Shown here in pieces: positions 10,867 through 62,344 of a stretch of DNA of 64,000 nt. The stretch's first letter is position 1; every line of letters starts with the position of its first letter. The DNA lies in contig CDMY01000347.1 of NCBI GenBank assembly GCA_001179505.1, positions 372,001 through 436,000 of the forward strand, in the 5' to 3' direction. Source of the DNA: Vitrella brassicaformis CCMP3155. Its lineage: Eukaryota > Protista > Chromerida. The translations under genes and the position numbers were made by a program. The notes beneath the pieces are model-generated. The model made no database searches and was not told the origin of the DNA. It was given only the letters and a program-made list of their open reading frames with translations.

Positions 10867-13800
10867 CTCGAGCAGCCGCTATTGGAAAGCCATGAGGGAG
10901 AAAATGAAGATATGCAAGCGCCGAAGGAAGATATCCCATCAGAACCCACAGAGCATCGCGAGGAGGCAGTTGCTCCCCCCCAAGAGGGCACAGGGGGCCA
11001 CGAGATTGCAGGCGTGTCAGAGAAACCTCAAGAGAAAGAGAAACCGTCAGAGACGGAGACAGGGCCGCCGGATGCCAAGTCACCACCTGCTGCCGCAGCG
11101 AGTGGCAGCGAGACGCCACCAAAGGAGCCGGCCCCAGTCCTTACTCCAGAGCAAGAGACGCCACCTGATGTCAACAACACGGAGTACGATGAATCAGGTG
11201 AAGGTAAGTACTCCCCAATCTGTCAGGCCGATGAGCGTATCTGCCGCTGTTTCCATCGATCCTGTCTTTAGGTGAGCTTTCCTTTGTCAGCCTGGACGAA
11301 CGTTTCAACAGACTGCAAGATCGGCCTACACCAGGACAATCAGAGCATGCCGACACGCCAGCAGCAGCAGTTGGCAATGGTGCGAGCAGCAGTACACCTC
11401 CCGAAGCGCACGAAGGCAGCCCGCCGAGCCATGCAGCTGGAGAAGAGGAACAGGTGGTCAGTGGCAGTGCCACGGCAGACTTAGCCTGGTTCGACAGGCT
11501 GACGGAGACAGAGTTCACGCAGAGTGACGACATATTCATGCCAGGTGCTGTTCCCCTTCTCTTGTCACTGACTGTCGTTGAATTCGTTGTTCATGTGTGT
11601 GTATGTGTGTGTGTGTGTCTGTGTGTGCAGATCCAGCTGCCCCAGAACAGAAAGTCGTGAGCCCCAAGATGTGCAACGCATCCCCAGCGAAAGTCATATT
11701 CATCCAAAAGGCGTTCTGGCGTGAGAAAGCCACAGACCTTCGCGCACAGCCCGCCCACATGCCAAATTCTCTTCTCACTATTGGCTGCAGAGCTGGCCTT
11801 TGAAGACGCTCAGTGGTGCATCGAACACCGTAACCGTGGCCAATGAAATGCACAGATCACGATTGTACTAGCTTCCATAACATTTCTGCAGGAAGTAGCA
11901 ACTCCCAGTCTGAGGAAGGCAAAGAGCGCTTCACGGAGACTCAGGGAGGGCAGCCTCCTGACGGGACGCCCCAGAGCGAGCCGTCAACAAAGAACACGAC
12001 AGCTGTTGCCGACACATCATCAAATCAACCCCCAGGTGGTGTCTCACAGCAAGGAGAGCGGCCCGCTGATACGCAGCCCTCCCCTGAGCCTGAGGAATCG
12101 TCTGGAGGGGGAGATTCTGTCGCCAGCGACTCTGTGGTGAGTGATGAGGCAGGCCAGCCAGCCAGCCAGCCAGGCGCACACCTATGACTAGTCTTACACT
12201 CGTTTCAATGTTGTTTCTATGAAAGGCAGCATCACCGGGAGAGATGGATAGTCCAGCGGGGACTGTTGCGACTCCGGACGGTGCGACAGAGCAACAAGTG
12301 GAATCCACGGGGGATGACGACTCAGAATCGGACCAGGACGAAGAATCTGAAAAGGGTACGTCCTGCGCCTGTTCAGTCGCAGTCCGAATCATGTGTTGGC
12401 TCCTGCCTTGCCATGTTGTCTGTCAGACTTCGTGTCGTTTACGGATGTCTCGTCCAAATCTCGCAACGACGGCGGCGATGTAATGACGTTCCACATCGAG
12501 GCGGCCCTGCTATGGTATGAAAAGGTCCCTCGCCTGGAGACGCAGTGGCCATCCAGCTACAGTGAGGGCCTGCATTTGCTGGCGCACCTTCTGGGGGAGG
12601 ACAAGAAGAGCGCGAGGGCGGCCCTCATGAAGCAGATAGGTAGGTAGCAGAGGTATGGGCTGTGTTATGTCAACCGTGTCGTTTGCATCAGCTTCAGGTA
12701 GTGACACCCTCTCGTTCGAGGCTTTCAGCATGCTGCACCCCGACCACATCCACAGCACACTCGCAGCCCTCGACCGTATGGACGGAGAGGCACACCAAAG
12801 ACAGGGGCCAACCCTCACCTCCCACTCTGTCAATGTATGTTCTCTTCTTCAGACATGGATCACTGCTCGCTGGATGTTCCGAAGCTGGTCGGCGGTGGCG
12901 GCATCGATATCACAGACATTGGGGCGGACGCATGCAACACAGACGACCAGTCACCCGCCGATCGCGTGTGTGTCCTGATGGGGGAGAGCGGTCCGGACCT
13001 CACGCAAGAGCAGCTGGAGGAAAGGCTGAGGACGGGATCGCTGGCGGGTGCAACGGCTGAGCTGAGTGGCGTGTGTCTGACGCGGGATGAGATTGCCGAG
13101 GGACTGTCTGAGTGTGTGGTGCCTGTCAAGCTGGGCAGCAGTGACTCGGCACATTATATGATCCGCCGCGATGGGGCCGGGAGGTGGGGATCTAAACAAT
13201 GCCCGTTTCCGAAAAGTAATTTCGATGCCCGATTCCGAAAATCGATGCATCTCGCTTGATTTCGTGTTCTGTTTGTCTGCAGCGTGGATATGGAAGCGGT
13301 ACGCCAGGCCGGAAGAGTACGCCGACATGCAGGACGGTACGCACACACACCCCGCTCGTGGTGTCCGCCACTCGTTGCCTGCTGTATGTCAGAGGAGATA
13401 GAGGTGCTCATTCACCGCCCCTACGCCGACTATAAGCATATCAAACCGACTCGTGTGTTGAGAGTCCTCAACGAGCTGGTGGCGCAGGCGGGTGGCAGCG
13501 GCGGCAAAGGCGAGCACGACATCAAGGTGCAGATCCACCCGACACCATATCAGCTTACGCATCTCTCGAGAGCCGCCAAGGGCCGACAGCCAGGCGCCTC
13601 TCCTTTTGAGCATCGCGAGGGAGAGATAGCGGCGGAGCAGGCCCAGCCATTGAAACATGAAGGAGACGCACTAGCGCAACATGAACCACAAGAGATACCT
13701 CAGGAGAAGGCCGAGGCCACACACGAAGAAGAGGCGGCTACGGGGATGCCGCCAGAGCAGGAGACTGGGGCTGATTTGGTGGATCATGCTCCAACAGACG

Positions 13801-15288
13801 AAGGTGTGCAGGGCGGCACGGCCGAGACAAGCGGACCTGAAGACATCAGCGCTCCTGCTCAAGGCCAGCCGTCAAGCGAGGACATGAAAGCTGCTGCTGT
13901 TGATATATCACCAGAGCAGCCTCCAAGTGGTGTCTCACAGCAAGGAGAGACACAGCCCTCCCCTGGCCCCGAGGAAGACAGTGACGATTCAAAGGACGGT
14001 ATGCAAAACAGCCCATCGAGCTTTTCTCCCATACTTGTCGCCACCAACGATATTCTGCAGAACTTATATCGTTCTTGAGCGTCTCATCGTCACAGTCACC
14101 CTTTCCTCAGCATCACCGCATCATACGCGCAAGGACGAGGCATCAAGAACACGCAGGCACAAACACAACGAGACGGAGATGGCAACGCACAAGGCGACGG
14201 CAGCCTCCTGGTGTTGGTGATGGCGATCGCGGCGTCCGGCTGCTTATCACGGTCTCTGACGCCAACAAAGCCGATATACTGCGAAGCATCTTTGCAAGGA
14301 GGAGTCCAGAAGAGGTCCAGAGGATTCTCAGCCGCGCGGCGAATCATGACGCCACGGTCGCCAGCACAGAGGCCTTTCAGAAACTAAGTGAAGCCATCAG
14401 CCAAGGGGCCGTGCACATGTTCGGCAAGCGCAGAGGGGCCATGGAGACACGTACGTCAAGACAGCGGCCAGCCTTCTTGTCTGTGTCTCTCTCTTTCTTT
14501 GTTTCTTTCTCAGATCCGTCGGAGGATTTGTCAATGGACGTGGACATAATCGAGGCAGTGTTGGAGGGCCGCACTGTCGGGACTGAGGAGGGGAGGCTGG
14601 TGGCGCAGATCATCCAGAACACGCCTGCGGCCAAGCTCCTCGCGGCACTGGTGGGGCTGCCACTGGCCATGAGAAATGTGAATATGGTGAGGAAACAAAG
14701 GATCCGTGTGGATGATGTGTCAGTGTCCTGCTGTCCTTATCTGTCTGTCTCTTCAGGATCTCACGGACCGGAGCGTATATAATGAGGGGACAGGTCAGCG
14801 AGCCGGCTGCATCGTGCGACACGTATGGCTTTTTCACAAACACCGAAAAGCCCCGTCTTTCTGCTTTGCAGGGAGTAGACAAAGCCCTCCTACGTCGACA
14901 GAGGACACATTAGACCAGGAGGTACGTACAGCATACACAGACAGTCGACAGCCACCGCTCAGATGTCTCTGTCGCCCTCTTCTGTCTGTGCACTCTCTCT
15001 TGTGTGTTTCTGCCAGACCTTCATGTGCTTCACGCTGCGGCTGCTGAGTGGGGTCAGCGGCTTGCCGGCACACGACACAAGGCTGCACGAGCTGGCCACG
15101 CAATTGACTATAGGGGTACGATCAAGACAGTGAAATGGAGCTACAGGTGTCAGTCATGTCTCTCTCGCGTCTGTCTGTCTAATCAGGGCGGTCTTGTGCG
15201 CTGGGAGGAAGTGTTTGAGAGGGAGCTCTATGGCAATGGCGGCGGGTTTTCGCCTGTCTGGGGCTACGGAAGCTATGCGACCACCTAG
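10867..15288 (+). CDS. 3' part of the locus: third copy of the acidic module, Q/P/S/E linkers and unrecognised globular exons
   Basis: Chain of phase-compatible exons (…KVIFIQKAFWQLAFEDAQWCIEH…, FHIEAALLWYEKVP, RLLITVSDANKADILRSIF, GCIVRHVWLFHKHR, GHAIDYRG) ending RWEEVFERELYGNGGGFSPVWGYGSYATT* at 15288. Confidence 0.55.
10870..11470 (+). repeat. Duplicated exon-intron-exon module, copy 3
   Basis: Same sequence as the copies at 4580 and 5820. Confidence 0.9.
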
Positions 15289-25934: not shown

Positions 25935-26894
25935 TCAGGACAGCAAAAAAAGCCCCAGAGCCAAATGAACCACCCCCAAGAGGAGGGCAAATGAGGGCCT
26001 CACACCAGCGGCAGCCCCCCGCTTTGCCGGCCTTTGTGCCACCTTTTGCCGTTCTTCCAGATATTTCGGCAGCTCCTTCATCTCGACAGCTAATTTCTCT
26101 TGCACTGCGGGATCGACCAGCTGCTCGACAATCTCATAGACGACGTAGAACCACCAGAAGTCGTTTTTGACGTCCGGCAGCTGCTCAAGCTGGTTCAGGG
26201 TGCCTGATTGGGTCATAATCAATCGGTGCATGCAGCGAGTACAGAAATGTTCCGTTCACATGAGGGGGGGGGGACCTACCGACGAGGTGGTAGCCGCCGA
26301 CCTGGCGGCCGTCGGATGTTTTGACGGGCGGCCACCAGTAGGCGAAGCTGCTGCCGAAGCCCTTTATGAGACAAACAAACAAGATGAACGACAATACACA
26401 CACAGGGATAAGATCTAATCAGGGCGCCCCTCACCTCGTGGCCGAGGATCTCGCCCATGTCCTCGTCGTCGAACTTGACTGCGAAGATACCAGACGAGTA
26501 CACGTTGTCCCACTGCCCCTGACAAACACCAAAGCGCAACACACACACACACACACACACCGAAATGCATTTTATGTAGCCGTACAAGCCAAGGCAACGC
26601 AGTCAATGCAACTCGACACCTACTTCTTTGACGTCGTAATCCACGTGCATATGAAAGGCATCCGGGCCAAAGAAACGCTGGACGGTTTCGTTGTTCTTGT
26701 AGAGGCCGCCCGGTCCTGGGCTCTCGAAGATGCCCCGCAGCACCTTGACGAGGTCCTCAGTGGTGGACACGAGCCCGCCGCCGCCCCATTCGGCGGTCTG
26801 CCGCTTGTGCGTGGACATGTCGATCTGCTCATTGCCATGGATGGCCGGCTTGCTCCAGTAACGATTCAATATCGGCAGAGAGCTCCTGCGGCCA

Positions 26895-26932
<38 letters not shown>

Positions 26933-28060
26933 TGGCGGCTTGCACATGTGTGTGATGTGATGTGCTGTCTCTGTCTGTGCCCATATGTGCAGCTGGCATA
27001 CCCACCGTGGTTTCTCTCTATAGCGCAGCCATGTGCTGGTCATGTTGAGGGGCTCGTACAGCCGCACCTTGTAAACGTCAGCCAGCGGCTTTCCCTCCAG
27101 CTCCTCCAACAGGAAGCCCAGAAGGACGTAGTTGGTGTCGGAGTAGTACACGGCATACTGGTCGTACTTCGCGAAGTAAGGCTCGTCCTCACCGGTGTGT
27201 GGCACGTAGTGGGCCTCCATCTTGGCGACGAACGGGATGACCTCTTCTGGCTCCCACCGGCGATTGATGTCGGCGAGGAAGGTCTTGTTGAAGTCGGGCG
27301 ACTGCCAATGACATACAGATCACTGACTGCCAGTGGTGTATCTATGTGTGTAGGGACCTCACATTCCAGTAGTCCGGGAGTCCCGACTTGTGGTTGAGGA
27401 GCATCTCGACAGTGATCTGGTCGGTGTAGTTCGTGCCGTTTATCTGATGTAGATTGGGGGGCACCCTTGTCTCATTCGGCACCAAATCCATTATCTTGTC
27501 TACAGACGGGCAGACAGACAGACAGACAGGCAATTGAGACGGTGGTTCGATTTGTCCACCCACGTGTGTACCTGATAGGTTGATCTTGCCCTCGTCGACA
27601 TACGTGAAAACCGTCGCCGCCTGAAGCAGACAGACAGACAGACAGGCATTATGAATTCTCTCTCATACCCCGTATTACCCACCGTGAGCATCTTTGAGAT
27701 ACTGGCGATCTCATAAGGATGCTTTCGGGTGACCGGAGGCGGGTTCGCGTTGCGACCCGGAGGGCCGCCATCATACGCCCCCTCCCACACCAAAGTGCCG
27801 TCGCCCTTCGCGATGCGCATCAGGCCCGCACCCCAACCAAGGTTCCTGTCAGTGGCCCTCCCGAGAATGCGCTCGAATCGCTCGTATGCAGGGGTATTGG
27901 GGTCGAATTCGAAGCTGTCTGTGTCGGTGAGGTACGGATCGTACACTTGGAGGCCACGCATGAGGAGACACGACGAGTCGCCCTCCTTGCAGGGCTCCTG
28001 GGGGGACTGCTGCTGGCCAACGGCGCCGTGTGTGAGGAACAACAGGGCGAGCAGCACCAT
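25935..28060 (-). CDS. Beta-lactamase-family (class C/DD-peptidase-like) serine hydrolase, secreted, with a GPI-like C-terminus
   Basis: Signal MVLLALLFLTHGAVG; SxxK motif EIASISKMLT; LLNHKSGLPDYW; YYSDTNYVLLG; GGGGLVSTTEDL; spliced ILGHE|GFG (HxG); hydrophobic tail FALLLGVVHLALGLFLLS*. Confidence 0.88.
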
Positions 28061-28366
28061 GGTCAACCGAAAGCGCCGCCATAAATGAATCCCGCTTGCT
28101 GGCCGTTGGATGGTGAGATGGATGGACGGGAAGGACGGTGAGCGAGAGCCCCAACGCGAGAAGGGGCTGGACCCTGTATAATAATTGACCCTGTGCGTTG
28201 GGCTGGAGCGGTGGGGTGTTATGATGGAAGTGGGGGGGAGGGGGAGGAATGGATGAAGCACGAGTGGCGGAAACGTTGGACGAGAGGAGGAGGGAAGGGA
28301 TAGTTTGAGCTCGCACCGGCAATTGGCACGGGTAGGCACAGTCTTCCGCATCCTGGATTTTACAGG

Positions 28367-30302: not shown

Positions 30303-31042
30303 CGGCTGACTTGGTCGGGCTTCGTGTGGGCGCGGGTACGTCAGGGATGAGATGCAGCGCCTGTATGCCTCTGATGTTGGTGGGCGACTCACTGGCGCGG
30401 AGGTACTTGTTGCCCTTGACGTGGTCCTGCACGCGACGCTCCCACTTCTGATGAGTCAGTGTCGGCATGTTTGCAAAAGGTCACACCACATCACGACACA
30501 CAGACATGACACACATTCACACATGAGCTTCAGCTTCCCTCATGCTATCTGCTATGGTCATTTATCTCCCACCCACCTTGGACACTTGTCGCTCGATGCC
30601 ACTGACGCGCCGGGCGATGGCGAATTTGTCCTCAGACAGATCTTCGGGTTTGTCGACACCGCACAGGTGAGCGATGTACAGGGCATGACGCACGCGCCGC
30701 ACCGGGGCTGTCTGCATCACACACAGGCAAACAGACAGACAGACAGACAGACAACCGAGGCAGATCATGCACCCGTGGTGGGAATGGCCAAAGCCTGCGT
30801 ATGTGTGTTCGCACCTGCTCTCCGACAGTCAGGGCGTGTGCCTCGTCCAGCTCCTTGCCGGCCCTCTCGCAGTCGTCCACATAGAGGTCGAACGCCTGCT
30901 TCCAGTGGGCAAACTGCGGCAGCTTGAGAATGTTCTCGAACGTGTCGATATCCGAGTCGGAGGCGGCATGGATGAGGCCCTTCAGAGCCAGGCTCTTCAC
31001 AAGCCGCCGCAACTTAGACGATTCCATCGCTTTATTTCTCAA
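29494..31042 (-). CDS. Hypothetical protein with two internal repeats of about 100 aa
   Basis: Spliced exons give two units sharing W-K..F, R.ALY, VSGIExQVS and KWExR. Stop at 29494-29496. Confidence 0.7.
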
Positions 31043-31408: not shown

Positions 31409-34400
31409 ATGAAGATCTTTGCGGTTTTCGGCTTCCTGTTGGTGGCGCGGCTGTGCGGCGCGTTCGAGCCGACCCCCGCCCAGATGTGCCCGTCGCCCAA
31501 GATCACGTCCAAGAAGGACGGCCAGCTCACCAAAATAGACTGCACAGAGGCCGGTAAAACCACAAAAACAGAGGGAAAGTGTCCGTCCACCCACCACTTT
31601 TGTGTGCCGGAATGTGTGTGTGGTGTGTCCCTGGATGGATGGTATGCAGCGCTGAAGAACGCGCTGGCCAAGGGCGGTGCATACCTGTTCAAGTGTGCCA
31701 GCAAGCCCGGCGTGACGACCATCAACCTTTCGTCCAAGGAGCTGTTCTTCAACACGGACAAGGGCAAGGACACCTACCTGGAGGGCAAGGGCAAGGTCAT
31801 CCTCAAGGGCGCTCGGTTCCTGCTCAACTCGTCCTTCGAGCGAGACTGGCCCAAGGTGACGGTCAAGGGCCTCGGCTTCACGGGATCCACGAGCCCCAAG
31901 AAGGACGGCATGCCCGACGACGGCGGCGCCGCCATCTTCCGGTCAGTGGACGGTGGGAGAGGGTGCCTGTGAACATGTCTCGGAGCGTGTTGTGTTGTGT
32001 GTGGGGTGTGTCTTTGTTGTGTGGCGCAGACGTGGTGGTCAGTTGGAGGTCTCCAAGTGCTGGTGGGTAGGAGGGTGGAGCAGGGCGGCAGACAGATGCT
32101 TTGATGGATGGATGGGCTGCATTCCCTNNNNNNNNNNNNNNNNNNNNNNNNNNNNNNNNNNNNNNNNNNNNNNNNNNNNNNNNNNNNNNNNNNNNNNNNN
32201 NNNNNNNNNNNNNNNNNNNNNNNNNNNNNNNNNNNNNNNNNNNNNNNNNNNNNNNNNNNNNNNNNNNNNNNNNNNNNNNNNNNNNNNNNNNNNNNNNNNN
32301 NNNNNNNNNNNNNNNNNNNNNNNNNNNNNNNNNNNNNNNNNNNNNNNNNNNNNNNNNNNNNNNNNNNNNNNNNNNNNNNNNNNNNNNNNNNNNNNNNNNN
32401 NNNNNNNNNNNNNNNNNNNNNNNNNNNCGGGGTCGCTTCAGGTTTTGGGATAATCAGGCGCCCACGACCGGTCAGGACGTGGCCGGCGGGGCCATCTCGA
32501 GCATCGGAGGAACATGGACCAAGGTGGGTGCGTCACTGGCTGCTGGCACAAAGATGAGGATCGACACACACACACACACGCATACACACTTGGTGTCTGT
32601 CTGTCGTTGCCCGCTGTGTGCGTGTGTGCAGGTGGACAAGTCAGTTTTCTTCAACAACAAAGCCTCGAACGGAGGGGCCATCGGTAGGCACATGACACAC
32701 CACACCACACCACACCACATCACACCACACACACCATTGACCCTCCCATCCACCCACCCACCCACCCACCCCTACACACACTGATGCGTGGATGTATGTG
32801 GTGCAGGCAATCTGCACAACCATCTTGAGGTGACCAACAGCTACTTCCTCGGCAACGCGGCGAGCGGCATTCGGGGCAACCCCGGCCAGGGAGGCAACGG
32901 CGGCGCCATCTCCATCGACGGCGTCGACAACGTCATGAAGTTCTGTGGCACCGTCTTCGCCGAAAACACAGCCAACTCCTTCGGTGGCGGCATCTTCAGA
33001 GTGCAGGTACGCACGCGAACACAGCACTTAGAGATTTGCCTTTTCCTCACACACCACACCCTTGCCGATCTGCGTGTGTGTGTGTATGTGTGTGTGTGCA
33101 GAACCGGGGCAGTGCGCCAATGGAGCTGCTCAAGTCGATCTTCTACAAGAACGTCATCATCGAGGACGACGAGCAGGGCTTCGCCGCGGGGGCGTACCTG
33201 CAGCTGGGGCCCTACAGCATCAAGGACGTCATCTTCAACGGCAACAAGGCCAAGGGCTACTCGGCCTTGTTCATCGGACCCAACTCACAAAACGTCGAAC
33301 TCACCAACGTCGCCTTCGTCAAGAATGTCGCCACAAAGGGGCTTGCCGCCGGTGAGGGAGTGAGCGAGCGAAGGGGTGGGAGGGAGGGAGGCATCCCTCG
33401 TGGGACGTGACCATGTGACATTGTCTGGTGTGTCTGTCGCTGTGCCTGCAGGTGTGGGCATATCAGGCGGGACCAGCGGCATCATGAACAAAATGACCTT
33501 CTTCCAGAACAAGGCGCTGGAGGCATTCGCTGCCGTCTCGACCGGTGAGTGAGTCGAACACACACACACACACACACATGGTTGGTGCGGCGCGAAGTGT
33601 CACCTGCACTGTGTCTTATTGTGTCGTGTGTGTGTGTGTGCACAGGCGGCCAGGATTACAAGTTGTCGAACTCTGTGATGACCAAGAGCGACGCCGGCAA
33701 CCCCTGGCCGCCCACCGGCTGCAAAGACACCTTCCTGGAGGGCGGCAACAACTACCAGGTACCCCTATCCTCTCCTCCCACACACAATCCATACCACTCC
33801 GCCAGCCACCCATGTGTGTGTGTGTGGTTGTGTGTGTGTATGTGTGTGTGTGATTAGGACTTTGACAAGCCCAAGGACGTCCAGGGCCCCGACCAGCAGT
33901 GCTCGCCGAAGGCCAAGGACTTCAAGAAGTCCAGTGGCACCAGCAAATGGATCACCGGCACGTGCCCACAGGTACCCTCGGACACACGAGCGGGTGGATC
34001 AGTGGATGGATGGATGGATGAATGGACACAATAGAGAGAGACGCAACATTTTCCGCCGTGCGTGTGTGTGTGTGTGTGTGTGTTGACGCCTGCAGATGTA
34101 CGTGAAGCGCAACAAGAAGTCTGTGGCCTGGGGCGCCCGCTGCTGGTCCATCCCCAAGTTCCGTGTCGACGGCAAGCACCCCCAGAAGCGTCTCGTCCTG
34201 CACATCGACGTCCAGGACGCCATCAAGAACGGCTTCGACAAGACCAAAGCCACCAAGCTGCGCAACCTCGATGAAGACGACAACGGCGATGAGGACCAGG
34301 AGGAGGAAAAGGAGGAGGAGGAAGAAGATAATGGCAACGGTGAGGAGGAGAGTGAGGGTGAGGATGAGGATGATCCCGTTGATGAGCTCCCCGAGGGGGC

Positions 34401-34769
34401 GATGCCCCAAGGCGAGGCGGAGGCCGCCGACGCACCCGAGCCCGAGACTCCCGACGCTGAGGAGGAGGAGGAGGAGGAGGAGGAGGCCGAGGCGCCCGAG
34501 GCCGAAGGTAGGTGACCCTACCCACCCCATCTCATGACATGACTGGTGGCTCTCTTGTGGTGTGTGGCGTCAGATGGTGCCGGCGACGAGGAGGCTGCAG
34601 AGGAGGACCCCGAGGCTGACGAGGAAGAGGTCGCCGAGACACCTGAGGCCCCCGAGGGAGCAGATGCGGCCCCCGAGGAGGAGCCGGCAGCAGCAGTCGC
34701 AGCAGGCAAGGGCAAGGGCAGGGCCGCCCTCGATGAGGCCACATCCGGTACATCACGAACGCATCACAA

Positions 34770-34800
<31 letters not shown>

Positions 34801-36748
34801 CGAACGGGCTTGTGCGTTACCTTCCTGGCTGGCTGCCTGTGTGCAGAGGTAGTGAATATGTTTGTGTCGGCGACGGCCGAAGTGTATGGGTCGACGCAGC
34901 AGGCCTTCAAGTTCGCCACACGCGGGAAGAAGATTGTCGACAAATGGGACCTCGACGTACGCCACAGACTCAGCCGAGCAAAGACACACACACACAGAGA
35001 GAGAGGGAGAGAGCCAGGCCTCCCACTATGTGTCGCGTCGCGTCTTGTGTGCACGCGTATTCAGGCGTTCTTGTCGAAGCGCATCAACCTGACAATGGCC
35101 AAGGAGGAGCAGGTGGGAAGGGGGGGTGGCTGTGGTGAGGAGAGGGACGAAAACACACGTGTGTGTATGTATGTGTGTGTAGGCCGAGCTCCTGGCCCAG
35201 CTGGACAGCGTCACCCCCAACGGCAAAGTGAGCTACAGAGAGTTCCGCAAACCCTTCCAAGGAGTACTGCCCGGTGGGCGAAGACGACACACACACACAC
35301 AACATGGATGCCTCTTTGATGCAACCATGTGTCCTTGCTTGCTTTGTCGATCTGCAGACAATGCCCGTCCGGTCTTCGCCTGCCCGAAGCCTCCCGTCGT
35401 GCTGAAGACCGCGGCCGGCAAGAACATCTTCGAAAAGATCTACCGCCTCTTCCCGGCCACTGACGAGGAGACCTTCGATGAGAACCTCAGCTATACCGTG
35501 ACCATCCAGAAATTCGACGCCAAAGGCACGAGATTACACACTTACACACATGGCGCCATGATGTTGCTGGTTGACCTCTGGCGCTCTCTGTCTCTGTGTG
35601 TGTGTGTGTTGATAGGTCTCCAGCTGGTGTACCAGCCCGACTACGACAAGCGTGTGCTGGGCCTCCTGTGCACCAAGGGTGTCGAGGCGCCGTCGACCGT
35701 CACAGCCTCGCTCGCCATCACCGTGTCTGACGACCGCAAGGTGCACGCCGCCAAGCCCACGGTGTGCAAGGTCAGACTCGTGTGCACGGCGGCTGCCGGC
35801 AAGGGCAAGGGCAAAGGAGGCAAGGGCAAGGGCGGCAAGGGCAAGCCCGAAGACGCCCCTGCGGACGACACCGCTCCCGAAGCCGAGGCCCCCGAGGCGC
35901 CTGAGGCCCCCGAGGAGGCGGCAGCCGGCAAGGGCAAAGGGGGCAAGGGCAAGGGCGGCAAGGGCAAGGGTGGCAAGGGCAAGGGCGAGCTTCGTAGCCT
36001 CACGGGCTACAGCTACGGCTACGGCTACGGCCTTGGCGGCCCCAGGAAGACTGCGAAGGGTACGGAAAGCGCAGAGAGGGCGGGATGGCCACTTCGATGG
36101 AAGCCGCTGGTGTGTTTGTGTGCAGAAATAGTGGATATGTTTGTGTCGGCGACGGCCGAGGTGTATGGGTCGACCGAGAAGGCCTTCAAGGTGGCCGCTC
36201 GCGGCGACGAGTTCGTCGACAAATCCGACCTCGAGGTAAGGCTAGAGCAAAGCGGTCGCTGCCAGATGGCTAATGTGTGTGCGTTGTGTGGGTCCGCGCG
36301 GTCCATGCATTGCACAATGAATGCAGCACTTTCTGGCGAAGCGCATCAACATGACGCTCAACGTGTACGAGCACGCCAAGCTGCTGACCGCCTTGTCCTC
36401 CATGACAGAGCCCAAGCTTGACTACGCCGTCTTCGAGAAAATCTTCAAGGGCAAGCTACCAGGTAGAGCGACGTCCATACCGACTCCACGCCATTAACCA
36501 CTGCTCTGCGTGTGTGCGTCAATCAGATAATGCCCGTCCCGAGTTCAAGTGTCCCAAGAGCCCCGTCGTGCTGAAGGCCACGGCCGGCAAGAACACCTTC
36601 GAGAAGATTTTCCGCCTCTTCCCGGCCACTGACGAGGAGACCTTCCACGAGGCCCTCAACTACACCGTCAAGATCAACAAATTCGACGGCAAAGGTGCGG
36701 CAGCAGCCGCTGACACACGACCGTGGCCCCCTTATCTGTTTCATCGGC

Positions 36749-36781
<33 letters not shown>

Positions 36782-38801
36782 TGTTTTGATAGGTCGCAAG
36801 CTGGTGTACCGCTCGTCCTACGACAAGCGTGTGCTGGGCCTCCTGTGCACCAAGAAGGTCAAGACCCCCTCCTCCGTGACAGCCTCGCTCGCCATCACGG
36901 TGGTCGACAAGAAGAAGAACAAGCACGCCGCCAAGCCCACGGTGTGCAAGGTCAAGCTCACCTGTGAGGCCGCCAAGTCCAAGGGCAAGGGCAAGAGCAA
37001 GGGCAAGAGCAAGGGCAAGAGCAAGGGCAAAGCAAAGGGCAAAGGCAAGAGCAAGCCCAAGAAGCCCAAGCTCCGCAATCTCCAAGACGAAGAAGAGCAA
37101 GAGGAGGATGAACCCTCCTACATCGAGGCACCAGAGGAGGACGAGGCCGACGACGAGAGTGAGGATGATGCCGTCGACGAGGCCCCTGAGGAGGCCGAGA
37201 CTCCCGACGCTGAGGAGGAGCTGCCCGAGGCCGAAGGTAGGTGACCCCACCCACCCACCCCATCTCATGACATGACTGGTGGCTCCTTTGTGCTGTGTGG
37301 CGTCAGATGGTGCCGGCGACGAGGAGGCTGCAGAGGACGACCCCGAGGCTGACGAGGAAGAGGCTGCCGAGGCACCTGAGGCCCCCGAGGAGGTGCCGGC
37401 AGCAGCAGTCGCAGCAGGAAAGGGCAAAGGCAAGGGCAAAGGAAAGGGCAAAGGAGGCAAGGGCAAGGGCGGCAAGGGCAAAGGCGCCGCCGATGAGGCC
37501 GCATCCGGTACACACAAGGGAGGTGCACGACCCCCCCACCCCCCACCACAACAAGCCCCATGAGTGGACTGCGCGTGCATGGTGGATGGATGGATGTGTG
37601 TGAACGTAGATGTGCTGGGTCTGTTCGTCAACACCACGGCCGCCACCTATCCGTCCATCAGAAAGGCCTTCATGATGCTCGCCCGGAAGAAGAAGGTCTT
37701 CGACAAAACCGCACTCTTCGTAAGCACACACACACACACACACAAACACACAAACACACAAACACACAAACACAAACACACACACACAAACAAGCCGCTT
37801 GACACGCACTGACCCCTGTGTGTGTGTGGGTGTGTGTGTGTGTGCAGGGTTTCCTGACGAAGCGCGTCAACCTGACCCTCACACGTGACGAGCGGGCCGA
37901 GCTGCTGGCCCAGCTGGACAGCGTCACCAACAACGGCTTAGTGAGCTACAGAGAGTTCCGACAGCCTTTTGTGGGCATCCTCCCAGGTAAGGTACCTTAA
38001 TGCAGCAAGAGGGAGGGCAACGCATGGATGGCCACGCAAGCCCTCTCCCTGTCTGCTGCACTGTGCGTGCGCCACTTCAGATAACTTGCCCCCGGTGTTC
38101 GCCTGCCCGACGCCTCCCGTGGTCCTGAAGGCCTCCGCGGGCGGCAATGCATTCGACAAGATTTTCCGCCTCTTCCCGGCCACCGACGAGGAGACCTTCC
38201 CTGAGGCCCTCAACTACACCGTCACCATCGAGGAATTCGACGGCGAAGGCACGTTATTGCACATTCACAGCCGCCCATCTATTGTGTCTCACTCACAGCC
38301 GCCTATTGCCTCTCATTGGCCTTTCTGTTTCTCTCCGTGTTGACAGGTCGCCAGCTGGTGTACCAGCACCCCTTTGGCAAGCGTGTGCTGGGCCTCCTGT
38401 GCACCCAGGCCGTCGAGATGCCCTCCTCAGTCACAGCCTCGCTCGCCATCACGGTGATCGACAAGATGGGCAAGCCGCACGCCGACAAGCCCACTGTCTG
38501 CCCGCTGACACTCGTGTGCACGGCGGCTGCCGGCAAGGGCAAGGGCAAGGGTGGTAAGGGCAAGCCCGAAGACGCCCCTGCGGACGACACCGCTCCCGAA
38601 GCCGAGGCCCCCGAGGCGCCTGAGGCGCCCGAGGAGGCGGCAGCTGGCAAGGGCAAAGGAGGCAAGGGCAAAGGGGGCAAGGGCAAGGGCGGCAAGGGCA
38701 AAGGCGACGCCGGCAAAGGGAAGGGCAAGGGCGACGCCCGCAGCCTCCTCGACACCGGCGTGACGGCTGCGGAGGGCAGCGAGGACCTGCTGCTCGTGTA
38801 A
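31409..38801 (+). CDS. Large secreted modular protein: right-handed parallel beta-helix (GGAI/FxxN repeats) plus three EF-hand/cadherin-like modules with acidic and GKG linkers
   Basis: Signal MKIFAVFGFLLVARLCGA; repeats GGAAI, GGAIS, FFNNKASNGGAIG, FLGNAAS, FAENTANSFGGGIF. Three modules (about 34845-35790, 36125-36970, 37600-38520) with LDSVTPNGKVSYREF, DNARPVF, FPATDEETF and KRVLGLLCT. Spans a gap. Confidence 0.8.
32128..32427. other. Assembly gap (300 N) inside the beta-helix gene
   Basis: N run. Confidence 1.
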
Positions 38802-57415: not shown

Positions 57416-59300
57416 CTCCCAGCCACCCACTCACCGCCGTCAATGAGGTCCTTGTCGATGTTGAGGTAATCATAGATCTTGCCAATGATGTCGATGTCGG
57501 TTTGGTTCTTGACATCAAGGTCGATCAAATCCTTCACCAGGTCATAGATCTTGCCGATGATGTCGATGTCGGTGTAGTCCTTGACATCAAGGTCGATCGA
57601 ACCCTTCACCAGGTCATAGATCTTGCCGATGATGTCGATGTCGGTGTAGTCCTTGACATCAAGGTCGATCAAATCCTTCACCAGGTCATACACCTGCACA
57701 GACACCAGACGCCACACAGCACACGAATCATGGGGGAGGGGTGTCGAGGGGAGGATTCGGTGGCTGACAGACCTTGTCAGGGATGTTCCCGGTGATGTTC
57801 TTGGCGATGTCAAGGTAGTCATAGAGCTTCTCCGCCAGGTCTGCACACACATACACGCACACACACACGCAGGCAAGGAACAAGGAAGGAACCATTAGAG
57901 CACACACATGTGTCTCCGTTTCTGTCTGTGTCTCTATCTCTATCTCTCTGTGTCTCCCAGCCACCCACTCACCGCCGTCAATGAGGTCCTTGTCGATGTT
58001 GAGGTAATCATAGATCTTGCCAACGATGTCGATGTCGGTGTAGTTCTTGACATCAAGGTCGATCAAATCTTTCACCAGGTCATACACCTGCACAGACACC
58101 AGACGCCACACAGCACACGAATCATCGGGGAGGGGTGTCGAGGGGAGGATTCGGTGGCTGACAGACCTTGTCAGTGATGTCCCCAGGGATGTTCTTGGCG
58201 ATGTCAAGGTAGTCATAGAGCTTCTCCGCCAGGTCTGCACACACATACACACACACACACACACACGCAGGCAAGGAACAAGGAACCATTAGAGCACACA
58301 CATGTCTCCGTTTCTGTCTGTGTCTCTATCTCTATCTCTCTGTCTCCCAGCCACCCACTCACCGCCGTCAATGAGGTCCTTGTCGATGTTGAGGTAATCA
58401 TAGATCTTGCCAATGATGTCGATGTCGGTTTGGTTCTTGACATCAAGGTCGATCAAATCCTTCACCAGGTCATAGATCTTGCCGATGATGTCGATGTCGG
58501 TGTAGTTCTTGACATCAAGGTCGATCGAACCCTTCACCAGGTCATAGATCTTGCCGATGATGTCGATGTCGATGTCGGTGTGGTCCTTGACATCAAGGTC
58601 GATCAAATCCTTCACCAGGTCATAGATCTTGCCGATGATATCGATGTCGGTGTAGTCCTTGACATCAAGGTCGATCAAATCCTTCACCAGGTCATACACC
58701 TGCACAGACACCAGACGCCACACAGCACACGAATCATGGGGGAGGGGTGTCGAGGGGAGGATTCGGTGGCTGACAGACCTTGTCAGTGATGTTCCCAGGG
58801 ATGTTCTTGGCGATGTCAAGGTAGTCGTCGGGCTGCACACGAGCACATGACAAAGAATCATGGGGAAGGTGTGTGGAGGGGAGGATTCGGTGCCTGATAG
58901 ACCTTGTCAGGGATGTCCCCAGGGATGTTCTTGGCGATGTCAAGGTAGTCATAGAGCTTCTCCGCCAGGTCTGCACACACACACACACACACGCAGGCAA
59001 GGAACAAGGAAGGAACCGTTAGAGCACACACATGTGTCTCCGTTTCTGTCTGTGTCTCTATCTCTATCCCTATCTCTCTCTGTCTCCCAGCCACCCACTC
59101 ACCGCCGTCAATGAGGTCCTTGTCGATGTTGAGGTAATCATAGATCTTGCCTGTCTCCCAGCCACCCACTCACCGCCGTCAATGAGGTCCTTGTCGATGT
59201 TGAGGTAATCATAGATCTTGCCAATGATGTCGATGTCGGTGTAGTTCTTGACATCAAGGTCGATCAAATCTTTCACCAGGTCATACACCTGCACAGACAC
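57416..59300 (-). repeat. Nested tandem repeats: 72-bp coding units within exon-intron units of about 400-700 bp
   Basis: 72-bp period (catagatctt at 57471 and 57543). The intron text cacctgcacagacaccagacgccacacagc recurs at about 57690, 58085, 58700 and 59285. Confidence 0.92.
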
Positions 59301-60250
59301 CAGACGCCACACAGCACACGCGTGTGGGTGTACCCCCCACACTCACGACTCACTCACCCCATCAAGGTCGGGCGAGGTGGTTTCCGCAAGCACCTTCAAA
59401 TCCTCATAGATATCCTGTGGCCGCCGAGACACACACAGAAGGCACAATTGACTGAGATGACAGGCTCAGCCCTCACCCACCCACCTCGATCTTGTCGATG
59501 ATCTCAATGTCGTAGATTTTGTCGAGGCCGTCGTCGACGATGCCCGCGACACCGTCAACCACCTTGTCGCCGACATCCGTGGCTATGTCATCGACCCCTG
59601 ATAGGATGGCACACAACGCAGCAGGTCAGGATGGATGTGAGGCGCGCCCATCAGTCAGTCTGTCTGTCCCCTGTCACGCGTCTGTTTCCCTGACTGACTC
59701 ACCGTCGACCACGTCCTTGACGTCGTCATAGATCGAGTCGAGAACGTCAACATCTGCCCAGCACAGACGCGCACAACCACCATGAGTCTTCCATGACCAT
59801 CAACCAGCTCATCCTGTTGGCTCACCGGTGGTGTTTTTGTCAAGGTCGATGATGTCGTCCAGGTAGTCGTACACCTTGTCAACCGTGTCAGTGACATCGT
59901 CATGCACCTGCTCTCACACACCGTACACGACACACGAACGACACAAAGGTGTATGCAACCGCGCATACTGTGAGTGGGAGGAAGCCAAGGCCCAGCTGAC
60001 CACCCCCCCGGTGCAGGTGAGTGCGCAGGTGGGAGGGGCGGCCGGCCGGTCACGCACGCACACACGCCTGCCACGCCCCTCCCCTCACCTTGTCGGGGTC
60101 GATAATGTCCCTGATGATGCCCAGAATGCCGTCGATCATAATCTCTGTCTCGTGCCCCTGCAGGCGGCGCTTCTCGCTGCTGCTCAAGAATGCGTCATTG
60201 GCGTGGCAGACCACGCACAGCGCGGCCAGCAGAGAGAGCGCCCTGATCAT
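57416..60250 (-). CDS. Secreted tandem-repeat protein (24-aa DLVKDLIDLDVKDYTDIDIIGKIY units); 3' end in gap
   Basis: Signal MIRALSLLAALCVVCHA, then SSEKRRLQ. Repeated exon pair DLAEKLYDYLDIAKNIPGNIPDK | VY(24-aa unit)n DYLNIDKDLIDG, with the introns duplicated too. Confidence 0.8.
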
Positions 60251-60537: not shown

Positions 60538-62344
60538 ATGATGCGGCGAGGCGTCGCGTTGCTCCTCGTCGCAGCGGCGGGGCTGACGCTCGCCACAGAC
60601 GATTTCATGAACAAGCAGAAGCAGCCACAGCAGCAACAGCAGGCTGGAGAGGGGCAGCAGGTGGATCAGAGGCGTCTGCAGGAGATCAACGCCAGCCGGG
60701 CAGTAGAGGAGAGGAAAAACCGAACGGCCATGTACAAGTAAGCAGCTCGGCTCACCAGGCAGACACCGGAACTTAACTCGCTGTCATTGTGGCGTTGATG
60801 CTTATGCAGGTTCATGCAGAATACGATGCCCCTTGAGGATAGGAAGAAGACACTCGGCCTTATTATGACGTGAGATCGATGCACGAGGGAGGGAGGGAGG
60901 GAGGGAGGGTCTTCACTCACTCACTCGCTCGCCTCCCTCGGCGTGTGCGTGCATTGCTTGTTGTGTGGGTGCGGTGCAGTGACTCGGCGCTGCGGACGCC
61001 TCAAGAGAAGGTGACCGACCTGCTGGATCCTATAAATCTGGCTCCGACCGATGTCAAGTTCCTTGAGGACTTCTATGCCCTCATCGACGGCACGTACAAG
61101 GACGACGAGCTCATCTTCGGTCCGCCACACGCCGCACGCCACACACAAACCGGCACCTGCACACACGAGGACAAGCCATCACGCGCGTGTGTGTGTCTGC
61201 GACTGCTTGCAGGTCTGTTGCCAAAAGGATTCTTCAAGGGTTTGCCCGGGTTTGTTTTGGGCCTTCCTGCTGCCTTAGTTGACGCGATACCCGTGCTCGA
61301 GGCCATCGAAAATCCCCCATACCCCGGCTTCATCACCATCTCGACAGAAGAGCAGTGCCTGACTGAGAAGGAGGGCACCACGGAGCTTGTGGGGTACGAC
61401 CTGAAGCTCAACGAGTGCTTCCTCAAGTGTCAGCTCCGGTCTGGCTGCACGGGCATCACATACGAGCAGACAGACGAGGACGGTCAGTGTGCACACACGA
61501 GTGAGAGACGTGTCTGTCCAGTGAGTGAGTGTATGTGGATGTGGCGCTCTCGTCGCTTGGCCTGTGTGTCTGCAGGGGTGGCGATTGAGCAGTGTTATGT
61601 CCACACCAGCAAGGTCACCGGATCTGATCCCGTGACGTGCTTCGAGAGGATTTTCTTTGACGGCGACACAGAGACGGGCTTCAACGAGACGTTCGTTGAG
61701 ACCGGCCAGGGCAAGTGCCGGCTGTCAGACGGAACAGACTCATCGGCACCCAAGCCACCCAAATTCAGTCAGTATTCCACCGCCCGACACCAACACAGCC
61801 TGTGCACACTTCGGTGTGGGTCTTTTCTGTGTGCTGGCTGGTTTGAATGAACAGTTGAAGAGTCGGTCGAGGTTGAGGACATTATTGCGTGTGCGGAGCT
61901 CTGTGTGGAGGCGGGCGAGAACTGCCAGGGCATTGAGTTCCTCGGCGAGGTCGAACTCGATGAGGACGAAAATGCCAGCAGTGGCGCCGGCAGATGCAGT
62001 AAGTGCACTCACTGCACACCACGGGGTGTGCAGGCCAGGCCAGTCAGAGAAATCAAGCAAGGAAGGAACAAGCCGACAGACAGATGGACGCTAGCTACTA
62101 ATGCTGGAATCTTCTGTGTCTGTCTGTCTGGCTGTCTGTCTGTGTATCTCTGCCTAAGTCCTTCAAAGCCACGGGCCGCCCAGCCGCTTTGCCGTCCCGC
62201 AATGCTACGTCAACGTAAGAAAGAGAAACACCGGCAGCCCAGCCCGTGTGTGTCACTCACTTCCGTCCGTTGGTTGTGTCTGCCTGGTTGCAGCTGCCCA
62301 CGGGCCTATTCGGCCTCGGCAAGCTGGGCCTCGATTATGTCTGA
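60538..62344 (+). CDS. Secreted protein with two PAN/apple-like domains
   Basis: Signal MMRRGVALLLVAAAGLTLA, RRLQE; ECFLKCQLRSGCTGITY…CYVH; IIACAELCVEAGENCQGIEF…GRC; spliced end PQCYVN|LPTGLFGLGKLGLDYV*. Confidence 0.75.

Follow-up and report, generated by a model that had tools for sequence, protein, structure and literature searches.

Gene organization and expression

The window analyzed here, a 64,000-nucleotide stretch of contig CDMY01000347.1 from the chromerid Vitrella brassicaformis CCMP3155, carries on its forward strand a spliced and expressed gene (31409-38801) whose 25 exons join into a single open frame of 1615 amino acids. The encoded protein consists of a signal peptide, a β-helix head of about 520 residues, three modules of 196-197 residues, and four disordered, low-complexity linkers, each of which contains exactly one Arg-Asn/Ser-Leu (R-[NS]-L) tripeptide. 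The original prediction placed the gene at 34096-38801 and described a polyprotein of three modules. The parts it named are in frame, but the start lies 2.7 kb upstream at 31409, and the predicted span comprises residues 491-1615 only; the signal peptide and the head, which make up the N-terminal third, were overlooked. All coordinates refer to the window, and the features of this gene lie on the forward strand.

The introns are of the GT-AG type except for two GC-AG introns with donors at 35526 and 38249, which occupy equivalent positions in modules 1 and 3, whereas the corresponding donor of module 2 is GT. An assembly gap of undetermined bases (32128-32427) is intronic. Inclusion of a 33-nucleotide mini-exon (32030-32062) brings the model back into agreement with a paralogue on another contig, described below. 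A model in which exon 2 runs out of the gap was ruled out, as the mini-exon together with an acceptor before 32442 restores the paralogue match and fits the RNA depth and offsets. RNA-type contigs carry the predicted GT-AG joints; their RNA nature is probable, the label having been guessed by the tool but the contigs skipping introns. One such contig of 1918 nucleotides connects the exon at 32807 to that at 34096; its offset of 770 nucleotides is exactly that of the model, and it implies approximately 20 nucleotides upstream of the ATG. The joining of exon 1 and the mini-exon is based on the contig offset and homology. Coverage by the RNA-type contigs (runs X2 and X7) is more complete over the 3′ modules than over the head, which may reflect collapse of the repeats or 3′ bias.

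The signal peptide (31409-31462, about 18 residues), read from the sequence and a hydropathy scan, is the sole notable hydrophobic segment of the protein. The same scan detected neither a transmembrane segment nor a glycosylphosphatidylinositol (GPI) signal at the C-terminus, and membership in the GPI-anchored surface antigens was rejected. Database searches and fold predictions used single exons or natural genomic reading frames, and the joined model served for local counting and description. Genome searches covered the 72.7-Mb assembly of 1064 contigs. The window is intron-rich.

The β-helix head

The head (31463-34236, residues 19-537) is a right-handed parallel β-helix with GGAI/FxxN repeats, followed by a small C-terminal part; the mini-exon falls within it. 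In Pfam it matches Chlam_PMP (E = 9e-4). A bacterial surface protein is a homologue of the head; two exons, compared singly, are 50% and 35% identical to it. Local alignment of the head exons to one bacterial protein gave 44% identity over 265 residues. The bacterial family has at least 2753 members, often labelled Myxococcota, that combine PF13229 with a choice-of-anchor Q domain (NF041518). Homology extends along the length of the head and stops at bacterial residue 419, ahead of the choice-of-anchor Q domain at 444-496. In contrast to the bacterial proteins, the Vitrella gene adds introns, an endoplasmic reticulum (ER) signal and a eukaryotic tail. No solved structure related to the head was found. 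The head is thus a surface domain of bacterial type put to use by a eukaryote, presumably acquired by transfer.

The only other copy of the bacterial-type head found in the genome belongs to the paralogue on contig C617 (G000:C617, about 12600-14900, minus strand). There, the same head leads into a stalk rich in Ser/Thr and then a hydrophobic, GPI-like terminus, with no RxL (Arg-any residue-Leu) after the head. Similarity between the two proteins ends about ten residues before the first linker motif of the 1615-residue protein.

The three modules

The modules are 58-68% identical, and each combines a degenerate EF-hand pair with a cadherin-like β-sandwich. Their intron positions are common, and DNA identity is 57-82% for exons and 31-63% for the module introns compared. 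The modules thus arose by intragenic duplication, since protein identity is high, intron positions are common and the introns have diverged more than the exons. Three units of about 190 residues had been predicted, and their number and approximate size were correct.

The EF-hand pairs are located at 34847-35273 (module 1, three exons, assigned by analogy to the module 3 copy), 36126-36462 (module 2) and 37610-37986 (module 3). Language-model features of module 3, taken from its second helical half, scored 0.95 against EFhand_Ca_insen, a Ca-insensitive EF-hand, and 0.90 against EF-hand_7; nine of the ten Atlas family matches of this half fall in one clan. These scores bear out the EF-hand-like character proposed for the helical half. 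The module 3 EF exon folds as two helices with a predicted local distance difference test (pLDDT) score of 62 and matches Pfam EF-hand_7 weakly (E = 0.16, model positions 28-64); Foldseek with the same exon returned no EF match. A helix-loop-helix was found in the second half of module 3, the part covered by this test. Read by eye, none of the modules has a canonical 12-residue Ca loop (D-x-D/N-x-D/N/S-G...E). The first loop of module 1 has no acidic residue at positions 1, 3 and 5, and those of modules 2 and 3 are equally degenerate. The EF-like loop that had been described for every helical part is partly kept in modules 1 and 3, where the second loop, longer by one residue, still has D, T, N, G and E, but the loop ligands are lost in module 2. 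The EF-hand pair probably has a structural role, or binds Ca weakly at most.

The cadherin-like halves lie at 35358-35785, 36527-36965 and 38081-38519. For module 1, whose β-sandwich contains four Cys, an all-β model was obtained in the natural genomic frame, which includes a 30-residue intron insert (mean pLDDT 45). The best structural matches of this low-confidence model comprised intimin (Z 6.1), the cadherin-like domain of RET (5.6), dystroglycan (5.2) and Fat4 (5.0). The bacterial Cadherin_4 domain (PF17803) matched with a template modeling (TM) score of 0.54, within a range of 0.51-0.54 for model matches. Foldseek returned weak immunoglobulin (Ig)-like rows only (E above 0.005). The predicted cadherin/Ig-like fold of the β half is therefore borne out at low confidence: the models are consistent with it and do not prove it, as the Z and TM values are within the range of common arrangements. 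The Pfam cadherin profile PF00028 gave no match by exon or natural frame and none in the genome scan; split exons lower the sensitivity of these searches.

The motif spacing of the β half fits a cadherin domain. Of the cadherin Ca-binding motifs that had been proposed, DNxxPxF and ATDEE are present, but the preceding DxN is missing, ATDEE replaces AxDxD, and the LDRE position is occupied by VEAP, VKTP or VEMP. The cadherin-like domains stand 280-350 residues apart with no two adjacent. Neither the linker motifs DxNDN, AxDxD and LDRE nor a tandem junction of extracellular cadherin domains was found. The classical three-Ca linker cannot form because DxN and LDRE are absent and no cadherin-like domains are adjacent. 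Ca binding as first proposed is doubtful, given that most canonical ligands are absent and the domains stand apart, though by analogy with E-cadherin each domain may keep a single partial Ca site at its top. Likeness to cadherin-like domains (PF00028, PF17803, dystroglycan and RET) resides in an all-β unit of about 110 residues with a DN..PxF start, A-T-D-x-E and an F-strand ending in D. In contrast, the Vitrella modules have four Cys, sit behind an EF-hand pair and are never adjacent to another such domain. Membership in the classical cadherins was rejected for lack of a profile match, of DxN and LDRE, and of tandem domains.

A word search for module relatives was blank, as was full HMMER over 1.84 billion representatives, which did not return the query protein itself. 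None were found in metagenome contigs, among PDB sequences, by Atlas features of the β half, or elsewhere in the Vitrella genome, which was queried with individual exons and with profiles built from the three copies. The module exons had no significant match in Pfam or NCBIfam, and no papers naming chromerid cadherin-like proteins were found. Absence among eukaryotes is weak evidence, since the large search missed the query protein and chromerid proteins may be absent from the library or not retrievable in it. With this reservation, the suggestion of an undescribed family agrees with the searches, and the EF-hand-like plus cadherin-like unit, which has no detectable relative, would add a new kind of building block to extracellular proteins.

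The linkers and their RxL motifs

Linker 1 (34270-34747) is an acidic E/D/A/P tract with a net charge of -60 over the whole linker. It follows site 1, RNLDE (34261-34275, residues 546-550), about ten residues past the head. Linker 2 (35786-35992) is Lys/Gly-rich with EAP repeats and leads to site 2, RSLTG (residues 951-955), after which comes at once a Tyr/Gly/Ser stretch of nine residues, four of them Tyr (35993-36031 with the site). Behind module 2, a basic Lys/Gly/Ser-rich segment (36966-37073) precedes site 3, RNLQD (37074-37088, residues 1205-1209), and an acidic segment (37083-37507) that is paralogous to linker 1 and ends in Lys/Gly repeats. The last linker (38520-38801) is of the Lys/Gly and EAP type and contains site 4, RSLLD (38739-38753), a 17-residue tail and the stop codon. 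All four motifs are in frame where the original prediction had located them (34261, 35993, 37074 and 38739).

Together, the linkers total 489 residues with only 6 Arg and 15 Leu, and four of the six Arg belong to an R-[NS]-L. Linkers 1 and 3 are paralogous, as are linkers 2 and 4. Sites 1 and 3 have KLRNL in common despite wholly different upstream contexts (the head and a Lys/Ser/Gly tract, respectively), and sites 2 and 4 have RSL in common with different flanks. The Plasmodium export element (PEXEL) pentamer RxLxE/Q/D fits three of the four sites (RNLDE, RNLQD and RSLLD).

Within the two acidic linkers, the introns (34508-34573 and 37237-37306) are 89% identical to each other, compared with 31-63% for other paralogous introns. 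This may point to gene conversion in the recent past or to a later duplication of the segment.

Candidate protease and genes with RRL motifs

A gene for an aspartyl protease of the plasmepsin V (PMV)/ASP5 clade, the type of host enzyme that had been invoked for cleavage, is present in the genome (G000:C688:132600-133343, minus strand). It matches plasmepsin V (PDB 4zl4) with E = 4e-39, the next best match having E = 3e-7. Arg at -3 and Leu at -1 constitute the recognition pattern of PMV/ASP5 (PMC4764566). A second TAXi_N-type match lies on contig C231.

Two head-to-head secreted genes elsewhere in the window (60089-60250, minus strand, and 60541-60738, plus strand) each encode a signal peptide together with a short pro-piece that terminates in RRLQ. 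The first of them runs on into an Asp/hydrophobic exon array at 57416-59900.

Proposed processing and alternative explanations

These features suggest a secreted precursor that is cut at RxL by a PMV-clade enzyme and whose pieces assemble in a wall or matrix, a reading to which we assign a probability of about 0.45; cleavage at two or more of the sites, taken by itself, is probable. In the ER or Golgi, the candidate protease on contig C688 would cut after the Leu of each site. The predicted products are a basic 57-kDa head (isoelectric point, pI, 9.4), an acidic 43-kDa module 1 piece (pI 4.3), a basic 28-kDa module 2 piece with a Tyr/Gly start (pI 10.0), an acidic 41-kDa module 3 piece (pI 4.6) and a 17-residue peptide. 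More tentatively, the released pieces may associate extracellularly, held together by their opposite charges and by Ca2+ bridges between acidic tracts, as part of the laminated wall or of the matrix around it. The cadherin-like domains would provide rigid contact units, the β-helix a glycan-binding or surface-contact unit, and the Lys/Gly and Tyr/Gly stretches cross-linking handles.

Support for this processing comes from the single R-[NS]-L in each Arg- and Leu-poor linker, kept while the flanks diverged, and from the position of site 1 just where similarity ends to a paralogue that has no such motif. For the placement of one motif per linker, shuffling within linkers gave P values of 0.053, 0.065, 0.019 and 0.053 (product 3.4e-6), with the motif in all four linkers in 0 of 200000 shuffles. 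The PMV-clade protease gene and the two window genes with a signal peptide and RRLQ add to it, as do the diatom and Eimeria precedents discussed below, that of MYR1, which is cut internally by TgASP5 (PMC4764566), and the laminated cell walls of Vitrella, a free-living photosynthetic relative of the apicomplexans (PMC6492006).

A number of observations weigh against the proposal. The shuffling test was devised after the motifs were known, and the fair placement P is about 3e-3, equivalent to two independent events, because the linkers are pairwise paralogous. RSLTG does not fit the PEXEL pentamer, and all four linker sites are RNL or RSL, none RRL, whereas TgASP5 requires RRL, with Arg at P2, and does not cut RELLD (PMC4764566). 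The canonical Ca ligands are mostly missing from the modules, no orthologue was found in which RxL conservation could be scored, and no sequence feature points to the wall over another secretory destination. Six further RxL tripeptides lie within folded parts (one in the head, an RVL in each module, an RKL and an RQL). The claim that RxL marks module boundaries thus holds for R-[NS]-L, which is non-random at one per linker, but not for RxL at large, and if RxL is cut, the six would need shielding by structure. RxL before acidic tracts occurred 40 times genome-wide and the swapped control LxR 46 times, which is no enrichment in a crude count that extended beyond secreted proteins.

The last two observations and the duplicate nature of the linkers also speak for an extracellular adhesin or matrix fiber that remains uncut or is trimmed at its tail, with a β-helix tip, three EF/cadherin-like units on spacers that are charged and flexible, and RxL motifs as duplication remnants. 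A β-helix with Ig-like repeats is usual in bacterial adhesins. This explanation is considered somewhat unlikely: two motif types are distributed across four linkers, each at a composition switch, KLRNL was kept although its flanks diverged, and the full-length protein has no anchor to hold it. Alternatively, a processed precursor might serve not as wall material but as stored cargo of a secretory granule or extrusome, triggered by Ca2+ when released. Granule lattice proteins of ciliates are acidic, Ca-binding and cut from precursors, and the acidic tracts, EF-hand-like pair and alternating charge would suit a condensed lattice. The lack of similarity to any Pfam or NCBIfam family and the loss of most EF ligands, which argues against a Ca switch, make such storage improbable. 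At least as improbable is processing by a subtilisin/kexin-type or other protease at Lys-rich linkers or Arg, rather than by a PMV-clade enzyme after Leu. The deviation from RRL and the abundance of Lys in the linkers would agree with it, and the RXL protease of diatoms has not been identified (PMC5525289); however, the four sites have no dibasic RR or KR pair, and their invariant Arg at -3 and Leu at -1 follow the PMV/ASP5 pattern (PMC4764566).

Comparison with known RxL-processed precursors

In diatoms, the repeats of silaffins, frustulins, cingulins and silacidins end in RXL (PMC4557024). The Vitrella protein likewise carries a signal peptide and repeats with RXL at their C-terminal ends, and it resembles these precursors (silaffin Sil1p among them) in its acidic and Lys-rich segments and presumed extracellular structural role. 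It differs in that its repeats are folded two-domain units of 200 residues accompanied by a β-helix, and in coming from an alveolate with no known silica wall; no module exon gave any family or protein match, silaffins and frustulins included. In the Eimeria oocyst wall precursors GAM56 and GAM82, which are processed into wall pieces, RxL and RRL flank Tyr/Ser/Gly regions (PMC5718062). Those proteins belong to the same wider lineage as Vitrella, and the RxL directly before Tyr/Gly/Ser at site 2 is similar. In contrast, the Vitrella stretch has only four Tyr in nine residues after RSL with no closing RRL, which is not the extended Tyr-rich domain between RxL and RRL that marks the GAM precursors; the GAM proteins contain no EF/cadherin-like or β-helix domains, and no homology was detected.

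Substrates with PEXEL or its Toxoplasma counterpart TEXEL, cut by plasmepsin V and TgASP5, respectively, have in common with the Vitrella protein Arg at P3, Leu at P1, Glu or Asp at P2′ (three sites) and the presence of the clade protease. Unlike PEXEL, which stands shortly after the signal sequence, the four Vitrella sites are internal, the first at residue 546; none is RRL, and a free-living alga has no host-export step. TEXEL membership was rejected because the sites are RNL or RSL and ASP5 needs Arg at P2. By the defining features, the protein is not a silaffin, GAM, PEXEL, TEXEL or classical cadherin protein, although it would work in the manner of an RxL-processed wall precursor. What appears new is the cargo, folded two-domain units with no known relatives together with a bacterial-type β-helix.

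A broader proposal, which we regard as unlikely, is that the Vitrella PMV/ASP5-clade protease serves generally as a pro-protein convertase, cutting secreted polyproteins at several RxL sites within them and releasing folded wall subunits that include the new EF-hand/cadherin-like module. If so, the ancestral task of the PEXEL/TEXEL system would have been wall building in a free-living organism, tied to RXL processing in diatoms and Eimeria. The gene touches on two open questions, the origin of the malaria protease that cleaves PEXEL and the enzyme that cuts algal RXL wall precursors. It makes them directly testable because four defined candidate sites separate folded domains that are well suited to antibodies, and because Vitrella is a free-living relative that can be cultured and has a named candidate enzyme.

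Neighboring genes

Upstream, a minus-strand gene (30632-31042) is arranged head-to-head with the polyprotein gene, the two starts lying about 370 bp apart. Farther upstream, a spliced minus-strand gene at about 26600-28100 appears by eye to encode a secreted serine hydrolase of the β-lactamase fold, with SISK and GGG motifs.

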